The notes under the pieces were generated by a model that was given only the letters and a program-made list of their open reading frames with translations, had not been told where the DNA came from and ran no database searches. A stretch of 64,000 bases of DNA from Pelomyxa schiedti (Eukaryota; Protista; Evosea). Location: the NCBI GenBank assembly GCA_020536535.1, contig JAHLWZ010000596.1:37369-101368 (forward strand). Reading direction: 5' to 3'. A program made the position numbers and the translations under genes. This document shows positions 13,709 to 15,370 of this stretch, piece by piece; position 1 is the stretch's first letter, and each line of letters begins with the position of its first letter.

Positions 13709-15370
13709 ATGACTGACAGCGCATCCACGGCATGGTCCTATCTGTTATCGTCGGTCGACGGATCTACGGAGGCCGCCAGCTCTCAAGCCAAGTTGCTCCT
13801 GCTGATAAACAAACTGGCCTCGTCAAACAGGATAACTGATGAGGAGAAAGCAAAGTTCAAAACGGCCGTGCTCGCCCTCGATGGGAGCAAGTCAGGTGGT
13901 GCTTTTTTTTTTTTTTTTTGTTCAATAGATATTACTATTTCGGAACGGCAGCTATGGTGTTATGATTAATCGTTGTTACAGCAGAATCGTGGGAAGCTGT
14001 AAAGGGCAGCATGCAGGGATTGTTGCAGGAATTGAAAGATATTGTTCTTACTCCGCCGTGGGTAGAACAGAGCTTCCAACAACAAAATCTCTTCCAGTCT
14101 CCACAGCAGTCTTTATTTCTAAATCAACAAGCCTCGTTATTTCCTTCTACACAGCAATCCTCTTTGTTTCCCTCTGCACAGCAGACCTCTTTGTTTCCCT
14201 CTCCACAACAATCCACTTCGTTTCCAACTCAACAGCAGTCATCTTTATTCCCATCTCAACAAACCTCTTTGTTTCCCTCTCCACAACAATCGTCTTTATT
14301 TCCGCCTGCGCAGACTGTTGCATGCACCCCGTCAACTCTCTTCCCGTCAACGCAGCCAAATACGTTTCAACAGCAACCTGTTCAGCAGTCACCAGGGATC
14401 GGTTTCCGAAGTGCGAATCCATTCCCCGTTGCCACCCAACCTCCCCCTGCTACAGGTATCTAGAACTTCTTGTAATTTTATTAAAGCTCGTCCCAGAGGA
14501 TACCCCCTCTCCTTCGTCGGCCACGGAGACTTATAAATGTCCATACTTGAATACTTCGGCTGAATCCTCCATTCCAACATTCAAGGTAGTGCTTGTGGGG
14601 GACGGTGGAGTGGGTCTGTACCCATTATTACGTAGTTTACATGTTAACTCTACAAAGGTAAATCCACATATTTCGAAAGACTAAGTGGTATTTTCTCTAC
14701 AATAGAATGACTCTTTCATCTGTTTTTAGAGGGCACCTTTCGCAAAGTGTATATTCCCACCCTGGGGGTTGAGGTTCGCCCCATTACTTTCAACACGAGC
14801 AACGGTCCCATTCGGTTTAACTGCTGGGTTCTTGCCCCTTTTAGTTGCGATTGTGTTAACCCCAACAGGATTGTGCTGGTCTAGAAAAGTTTGGCGGTCT
14901 GAGGGATGGTTACTTTATTGGTGTGTCCTCTCAAAACCACGTCCTCACTAAAAGGATTATAGGTGGCCATGCAGCAATGCTCTTCTTTGATCTTACCTCT
15001 CGGTTAACACTTCAAACTACGTCTCGATGGCACCACGACATTGTTCGAGTCTGTGAAGCAATACCCGCAGTGGTATATCCCTAACTTTCGAAATTCTCGT
15101 AAGTAAATGATTCTTCAATGTAGATGGTAGCTACAAAAACCGATATTCCCACCTACAGGAAGATTACAGAGGATGACATTATTGAGGATGCCGAGGTTAT
15201 TCCCCACATACTAAGCACCCGTTTTCAAATATTCCTTTTCCAAAAAGAAAAAGAATCTGCCGTATACTGAAATCAGCTCCAAGACACACACAAACCTCGA
15301 AGAGCCCTTCTTAATTCTCGCGAGAGCCCTCACACATAACCCCTCTCTCACTTTCGTTAGCCAGCCTTGA
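13709..15370 (+). CDS. Divergent Ran-like GTPase with a long N-terminal extension (helical region plus SLFP/Q repeats); Q69L-equivalent; no acidic tail
   Basis: Spliced G domain: [111 protein letters not shown]. Upstream exons join in frame through GT-AG introns. Confidence 0.85.
14080..14350 (+). repeat. Coding tandem repeat of about 27-30 nt units encoding (Q)QxSLFPS(x)
   Basis: Repeated tctttgtttccctct/tctttattcccatct units. The peptide has about 10 LF-core repeats. Confidence 0.85.

Follow-up and report, generated by a model that had tools for sequence, protein, structure and literature searches.

Ran, as a rule, is a single switch that diffuses freely and is extremely conserved; when its Gln69 is changed to Leu, it acts as a dominant poison in model cells. 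In the Rho-type proteins Rnd1-3/RhoE and RhoH the catalytic glutamine is replaced, and these proteins bind guanosine triphosphate (GTP) without hydrolysing it and are controlled by expression and localisation, not by cycling. Ran's C-terminal tail is auto-inhibitory, biases Ran towards guanosine diphosphate (GDP) and is required for RanBP1/2 (PMC8607414). Nup358/RanBP2, Nup50/Nup2, RanBP3/Yrb2 and Nup153 are proteins that carry phenylalanine-glycine (FG) repeats together with Ran-binding modules (PMC4866044, PMC3045386). The gene considered here lies at positions 13709-15370 (+) of a stretch of 64,000 nucleotides (nt) of Pelomyxa schiedti DNA (contig JAHLWZ010000596.1, positions 37,369 to 101,368), hereafter the window, and appears to join a Ran-type GTPase (G) domain to an arm of Leu-Phe-Pro repeats. 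With a probability of about 0.4, its product would be a lineage-specific Ran paralogue of 420 amino acids that is held in the nuclear pore or another FG-type phase and is biased towards GTP.

The region fits a single gene with nine exons (1263 nt, 420 codons followed by TGA), in which all junctions are GT-AG (Table 1). The gene model was assembled by hand from the sequence and the frames of its open reading frames (ORFs). Searches, family scans and structure predictions were run exon by exon, with exons 6-7 taken as one reference because intron 6 is in frame and stop-free. The encoded protein would consist of four parts: a helical head of ~85 residues, a disordered repeat region of 127 residues, a linker rich in Ser, Thr and Pro, and the core of a Ran G domain. 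A preliminary description of the locus had drawn the gene in the same outline, which was right, but it had missed the 30-nt exon 4 (14658-14687) that completes the P-loop.

By descent the G domain is a member of the Ran family. When exons 5, 6-7 and 9 were compared with the PDB, only Ran/Gsp1 was found at E-values (E) of 1e-7 to 7e-14, while other families (Rab) appeared at E>=0.07, and the earlier assignment of the domain as Ran-like is borne out by these matches. Exon 5 matched solely Ran/Gsp1 (best E 9.5e-10), with 20/32 residues identical to Ran 33-64. Exon 9 likewise matched Ran/Gsp1 best (E 8.6e-08, 23/40 identical), the next family being Rab7 at E 0.07. Exons 6-7 gave an E of 7e-14 with a 14-residue alignment gap that falls exactly on intron 6, and exon 7 matches Ran 85-118. 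Retention of intron 6 would add 14 residues just past switch II and leave the reading frame intact. Identity to Ran is ~50-62% in the best exons, and per-exon Pfam scans returned weak Ras matches only.

The nucleotide-binding motifs of the domain are kept, namely GDGGVGKS, the switch I Thr, DxxG, TKxD and SSK. The last 17 residues of exon 3 align with the Ras/Ran N-terminus, and the P-loop spans the junction of exons 3 and 4 and reads GDGGVG/KST where Ran has GDGGTGKT; exon 4 supplies the Lys-Ser-Thr that completes GxxxxGK[ST]. The counterpart of the exon 4 peptide in Ran is GKTTFVKRHLT. A degenerate P-loop without lysine, as a model lacking this exon would give, is ruled out. Exon 4 opens with a GT that resembles a splice donor, so that gene models drawn automatically or by eye could omit it and take the GTPase for one with a dead P-loop. 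Switch I and switch II, the main elements through which Ran contacts karyopherins and NTF2, are both well conserved.

The domain also departs from Ran at several diagnostic positions. The G3 motif reads DCAGLE and not DTAGQE, which places Leu at the position of the catalytic Gln69 of Ran. The best PDB matches of exons 6-7 are engineered Gsp1 Q71L truncations, and these constructs rank on top because they read DTAGLE where the window reads DCAGLE. The G4 motif reads TKTD in place of NKxD, so that the Asn is absent while the Lys and Asp are retained. Since TKxD is the normal and functional G4 motif of Rac/Rho (PMC2575402), this difference is no argument against guanine binding. The G5 motif reads SSK, not SAK. 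The protein stops at about Ran residue 180 and thus has no linker, C-terminal helix or acidic tail, and no further Ran-like coding sequence was found between the stop codon and the next gene at 15566. The preliminary description had spoken of a GTP-locked Ran; the domain differs from Ran in more than the change from Gln to Leu, namely also in TKTD, in the missing C-terminal extension and in a charge-reversed alpha4 segment. It is accurately called a divergent Ran paralogue and not simply Ran, since the catalytic Gln, the Asn of NKxD, the C-terminal switch and the basic patch are all lacking and the N-terminus is not short.

The catalytic Gln, the tail and the basic patch could also have disappeared together through degeneration in a decaying or non-functional Ran duplicate, to which the upstream exons were joined by chance or by the gene model, and no orthologue that would demonstrate conservation was found in word, HMMER or metagenome searches. 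Decay is nevertheless very unlikely, given nine open exons, eight intact GT-AG introns, in-frame codon scores that are positive for almost all exons, and nucleotide-binding motifs that are all intact, one of them although it is split over a 30-nt exon. Purifying selection on the repeats, described below, argues in the same direction.

The protein begins with the helical head, which is formed by exon 1 and the start of exon 2 and carries four predicted helices. The preliminary description had proposed a helical N-terminal domain, and single-sequence AlphaFold2 agrees, with helices at residues 4-14, 22-38 and 44-59 of exon 1 (mean predicted local distance difference test score, pLDDT, 66.6) and a fourth at residues 3-21 of exon 2. 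For the remainder of exon 2 no secondary structure was predicted (pLDDT ~50), and the repeat region is accordingly predicted to be intrinsically disordered. No Pfam family was recognised in the head, and exon 1 had no Foldseek fold match at E<2. As family assignments, both the Pfam match to PACT_coil_coil (E 0.16) and the Foldseek matches at E>=2 are meaningless.

The repeat region comprises residues 31-157 of exon 2 (127 residues; frame 13984+3n) and contains 14 Phe at a spacing of 6-14 residues, mostly 8-9. The cores are LFP, LFQ, LFL and SFP, with six exact SLFP, seven LFP and 12 [LSTN]F[PQL] motifs. At the DNA level, Tandem Repeats Finder detects two units, one of 27 nt repeated 6.6 times (14128-14303, score 170) and one of 78 nt repeated 2.2 times (score 225). 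In 20,000 shuffles of the repeat peptide, none reached seven LFP or six SLFP, and the highest number was three LFP. The composition is Q29 S22 P21 F14 T12 L10, with a single charged residue, an Arg. Where about ten SLFP-type repeats in a charge-free Q/S/T/P background had been described, the periodic array is thus real, but the Phe motifs number 12-14, and 6-7 among them are genuine S/T-LFP.

All three plus-strand frames are open across the repeat array, so openness by itself proves nothing about the frame. The pattern of substitution among the repeat units is more informative. In seven aligned units, 8/9 third codon positions vary compared with 2/9 second positions (permutation P = 0.011 for the third-position enrichment), and 65/120 differing codon pairs are synonymous in the Q/S/L/F/P frame, compared with 19/104 and 9/110 in the other frames. 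As the differences between units are mostly synonymous in this frame, the repeat peptide is under selection.

Disordered, low-charge spacers with regular hydrophobic cores, as found in this region, are features of FG nucleoporins. Phases of the Nup98 type stay transport-selective with SLFG and even GLFS motifs, require charge depletion and balanced hydrophobicity and not the FG dipeptide itself, and become more cohesive as the spacers are shortened (Ng et al., doi 10.1101/2022.10.14.512266). Cores other than FG have a precedent in nature, the micronuclear Nup98 of Tetrahymena with its NIFN repeats. In light of the findings of Ng et al., the earlier proposal that SLFP is an FG-like variant is physically reasonable, but the arm has no FG, matches no Pfam nucleoporin family and holds just ~12 motifs. 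On paper, the repeat arm would behave as a cohesive FG domain does, but by the tests run it is no member of an FG nucleoporin family.

Exons 1-2 and the G domain probably form one fused gene. The phase-1 GT-AG link that the preliminary description had placed between them is confirmed in the model, in which intron 2 (14456-14496) restores the frame of exon 3. Fusion is supported by exon 3 itself, whose coding frame has no in-frame ATG and whose ~27 linker codons before beta1 carry a coding signature in their own frame (+0.11 bits, compared with -0.37 and -0.35 out of frame). The GC content of intron 2 is intron-like, at 0.34 compared with 0.48 and 0.51 in the neighbouring exons. The intron lengths are, in order, 86, 41, 44, 42, 41, 42, 51 and 52 nt, and introns 3-8 are backed by colinearity with Ran in the PDB alignments, so that intron 2 fits the 41-52 nt class of the homology-validated introns. 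In addition, the frame of exon 2 meets a TAG (14461-14463) two codons past the donor, and retention of intron 2 would yield a repeat-only protein. Further upstream, intron 1 has a GC content of 0.31 compared with 0.54 and 0.48 in the exons on either side, exon 1 scores +0.18 bits in frame compared with -0.56 and -0.33 out of frame, and a stop codon lies two codons 5' of its ATG.

In place of an obligate fusion, the locus could encode two products, a repeat protein from exons 1-2 and a separate Ran-like protein from an internal promoter. The repeat protein would end at the TAG if intron 2 stayed in the transcript or if splicing used a nearer AG (14485-14486), an alternative acceptor that is indeed present and leads to an early stop, and the Ran-like protein could begin, for example, at an ATG near 14321 in the frame of a 240-residue ORF (13962-14684) that is open into exon 3. 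Codon scores do not separate the frames in the tail of exon 2 (-0.03 compared with 0.02). Nevertheless, two products are improbable. The synonymous-site signature sits in the repeat frame and not in that of the 240-residue ORF, and the tail of exon 2 keeps its F/Q/P style in the repeat frame. In both size and GC content, intron 2 is like the rest of the introns. Overlapping coding regions on the same strand are rare in eukaryotes, and a protein begun at the internal ATG would be rich in Cys and would include the translation of AT-rich sequence that resembles an intron.

The 240-residue ORF, with its hydrophobic, Cys-rich N-terminus, was considered as the true frame and is ruled out by the synonymous-site test; it is a by-product. 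Because it starts with ATG and continues unbroken into exon 3, this wrong-frame ORF could be mistaken in annotation for the GTPase's first exon.

Searches for relatives probed the uniqueness of the architecture from the N-terminal side only, the G-domain exons being at most 40 residues long and below the length filter of the word search. A word search with exon 2 found nothing at E<=0.01. A HMMER search with exon 2 against 1.84 billion cluster representatives returned 30 weak matches at E<1e-3, all to the periodic part only and without a self-match. The 30 matches have 30 different architectures with unrelated domains (G-alpha, Tudor, MIF4G, cuticle proteins and others), and there is no Ras-type GTPase or nucleoporin among them. 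The exon 3 part, searched by words through the stop-free 240-residue reference, gave four candidates, none significant. JGI metagenome scans with exon 1 and exon 2 found no relatives, a viral-contig scan with exons 6-7 found nothing, and shallow literature searches returned no Ran paralogue with an extension, FG repeats or a like architecture. Exact look-up of five ORFs from the window found none on record, and a word search with the DEAD-box (helicase) ORF gave one weak match. The source lineage is seemingly missing from protein collections, so the absence of relatives says little about the age or spread of the gene. Within the window, no paralogue or second LFP protein was found. An open frame rich in P/T/Q/A at 60561-60932 (+) is weakly similar to exon 2, in composition alone (tblastn without composition correction, E 1.6e-4), and has no Phe repeats.

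The idea of a GTP-locked protein fits the Leu at the catalytic Gln, the Gsp1 Q71L truncations as best structures and the missing auto-inhibitory tail. Without this tail the G domain would load GTP without an exchange factor, and without the catalytic Gln it would not hydrolyse GTP, with or without RanGAP. The absence of the tail would also mean that RanBP1-type domains could not handle the protein. Overall, the domain would act as a Ran-like module that does not cycle and is permanently 'on'. The repeat arm would allow partition into, or retention in, an FG-type phase, either the nuclear pore or another condensate of like chemistry, and the helical head may serve as an anchor or oligomerisation piece. 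A stationary RanGTP-like binding site would then be offered to partners of the beta-karyopherin type inside that phase.

A pore-tethered, GTP-locked Ran is physically plausible. The most specific form of the proposal, a Ran paralogue that is permanently in the GTP state and hard-wired into the FG-type phase of the nuclear pore by a cohesive non-FG (LFP) repeat, is quite unlikely. If it were true, import complexes would in part be disassembled, or export complexes assembled, on a stationary RanGTP-like site and not on the soluble Ran gradient, and the protein would be nature's equivalent of the RanQ69L deltaC reagent.

Several observations weigh against a GTP-biased paralogue held in such a phase. 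In the G domain, the difference between Gln and Leu amounts to one base (CTA compared with CAA). The place of exon 8 follows from its neighbours, of which exon 7 reaches Ran 118 and exon 9 begins at Ran 141; exon 8 itself has no Ran match in the PDB. It contains seven acidic and three basic residues, in a segment that is strongly basic in Ran, and is two residues longer. Of the basic surface of Ran 127-142, which includes HRKK, only KK is left, at the beginning of exon 9; the HR is replaced by AE, and the equivalent of Arg106 is His. With these changes, binding to importin-beta-type receptors, RCC1 and RanGAP may be lost or retargeted. In the repeat arm, exon 2 contains no FG dipeptide, and the Pfam scan found no nucleoporin family at E<=1. 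The ~12 motifs, compared with ~50 in domains of the Nup98 type, are few for autonomous phase separation, and in the literature consulted on FG-like phases no test of Pro after Phe was found. Lastly, codon-usage scoring does not prefer the repeat frame over that of the 240-residue ORF (0.06 compared with 0.21 bits); it is undecisive for the repeat part, where the choice of frame is carried by the synonymous-site test alone.

The same fused protein could also exist without being a nuclear-pore device. Its Q/S/P/F repeat would then be a generic low-complexity region of the kind common in protists, self-associating or acting as a spacer, and the Ran-like domain would work with new partners in another place, such as the spindle, the basal body or ciliary gate, or a complex specific to the lineage. 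The acidic alpha4 segment without a Ran match fits such a role, as do the modest identity to Ran even in the best exons, the missing FG dipeptide and nucleoporin family, and the 30 matches of exon 2, which are unrelated tandem-repeat proteins and include no nucleoporin or GTPase. The regular spacing of the LF cores, the near-zero charge and the selection on the peptide are, in contrast, more specific than expected of a neutral poly-Q tract, and the two switches have remained well conserved. On balance, a role away from the pore is somewhat unlikely.

Table 1. Positions of the exons, selected introns and neighbouring features of the Ran-like gene in the window.
Feature	Positions	Strand	Description
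Exon 1	13709-13895	+	Begins with start codon; 62 codons + 1 base; three predicted helices of the N-terminal head
Intron 1	13896-13981	+	86 nt, GT-AG, phase 1, T17 tract
Exon 2	13982-14455	+	~30 codons for the predicted fourth helix; from ~14074 Q/S/T/P region with 14 Phe (xLFP repeats)
Intron 2	14456-14496	+	41 nt, GT-AG, phase 1; restores exon 3 frame; junction creating the fusion
Exon 3	14497-14613	+	S/T/P-rich linker, then Ran strand beta1 and first half of P-loop (12 protein letters not shown)
Exon 4	14658-14687	+	30-nt mini-exon, (G)KSTYFERLS(E); flanking GT-AG introns of 44 and 42 nt
Exon 5	14730-14827	+	Switch I, strands beta2-beta3 (Ran 33-64); equivalents of Tyr39 and Thr42 retained
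Exon 6	14869-14920	+	G3/switch (19 protein letters not shown); Leu codon CTA 14881-14883 at the Ran Gln69 position
Intron 6	14921-14962	+	42 nt, in frame, stop-free
Exon 7	14963-15072	+	Equivalent of Ran 85-118
Exon 8	15124-15195	+	G4 TKTD (15133-15144, Thr codon ACA), then acidic segment; place of Ran 119-140
Exon 9	15248-15370	+	Equivalent of Ran 141-180, G5 motif SSK; TGA 15368-15370
Direct repeat, first copy	12921-13042		122 nt
Direct repeat, second copy	13345-13466		122 nt; ends 243 nt before the ATG of exon 1
Kinase gene	15566 to ~17000	+	Tyrosine-kinase-like Ser/Thr kinase; introns of 50-110 nt
Rpn13 Pru domain	18380-19027	-	Proteasome-related gene
U6 small nuclear RNA gene	25680-25785	-	Full-length, spliceosomal (Rfam RF00026, 102.6 bits); directly upstream of an ankyrin-repeat ORF
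PSME4/Blm10 HEAT region	31148-33220	-	Proteasome-related gene

The window is nuclear, intron-rich eukaryotic DNA of ~45% GC with compact housekeeping genes, and it includes a U6 gene and two genes related to the proteasome. The genome is very compact, since the kinase gene downstream of the Ran-like gene begins ~195 nt past the GTPase stop codon. Just 5' of the Ran-like gene lies a direct repeat, whose two copies are 93% identical and 424 nt apart; a promoter element, a small mobile element and a segmental duplication are candidates for its nature. Pfam recognised no family for the long ORFs at 4634-5902, 29041-30771, 40749-41918, 56737-57960 and 61985-63961.

If a GTP-biased Ran paralogue is indeed held in an FG-type phase, evolution can make of Ran a stationary landmark, and repeats of Leu-Phe-Pro may represent an FG-like code that occurs in nature. 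The gene would then be a new natural test case for research on nuclear transport and condensates. If the fusion is unexpressed or the Ran partners have been lost, it would be merely a lineage-specific oddity.

Compared with Ran/Gsp1/Spi1, the protein keeps the P-loop GDGGxGK[ST], switch I YxxTxGVEV, a further switch stretch (12 protein letters not shown) and the C-terminal core KKNLxY..S.K...N.E.PFL.LAR. It differs in having ~250 extra N-terminal residues, where Ran has roughly ten before beta1, and in lacking the linker, helix and DEDDDL tail. The C-terminally truncated laboratory reagents RanQ69L/Gsp1Q71L, used as locked RanGTP (for example PDB 3icq, 2x19, 8f19, 3wyg), share DxAGLE and the end at about residue 180. 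These reagents, however, are point mutants of normal Ran and tight karyopherin binders, whereas the protein described here has many more substitutions on its partner surfaces and a long N-terminal arm. The replacement of the catalytic Gln with retention of the nucleotide-binding motifs, as read from the sequence, is shared with Rnd/RhoH, but these proteins belong to the Rho subfamily, are no Ran paralogues and have no FG-like repeats. In function, these two groups and the FG proteins with Ran-binding domains (RanBP2, Nup50/Nup2, RanBP3) come nearest to the protein.

The repeat arm is most readily compared with the GLFG/SLFG domains of Nup98/Nup100/Nup116 (variants SLFG, GLFS and GLFA), with which it has in common disordered, charge-depleted, Q/S/T-rich spacers and regular Leu-Phe cores. 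Unlike in those domains, Phe is followed by Pro and not by Gly, Ser or Ala, the repeats are nine and not ~12 residues long, and there is no Nup98 autoproteolytic domain or other nucleoporin anchor domain. RanBP2, Nup50/Nup2, RanBP3 and Nup153 are alike in placing the chemistry of the Ran cycle beside FG repeats at the pore. Proteins of the RanBP2 type tether a Ran-binding domain, whereas in the present protein the tethered part would be the Ran-type GTPase itself.

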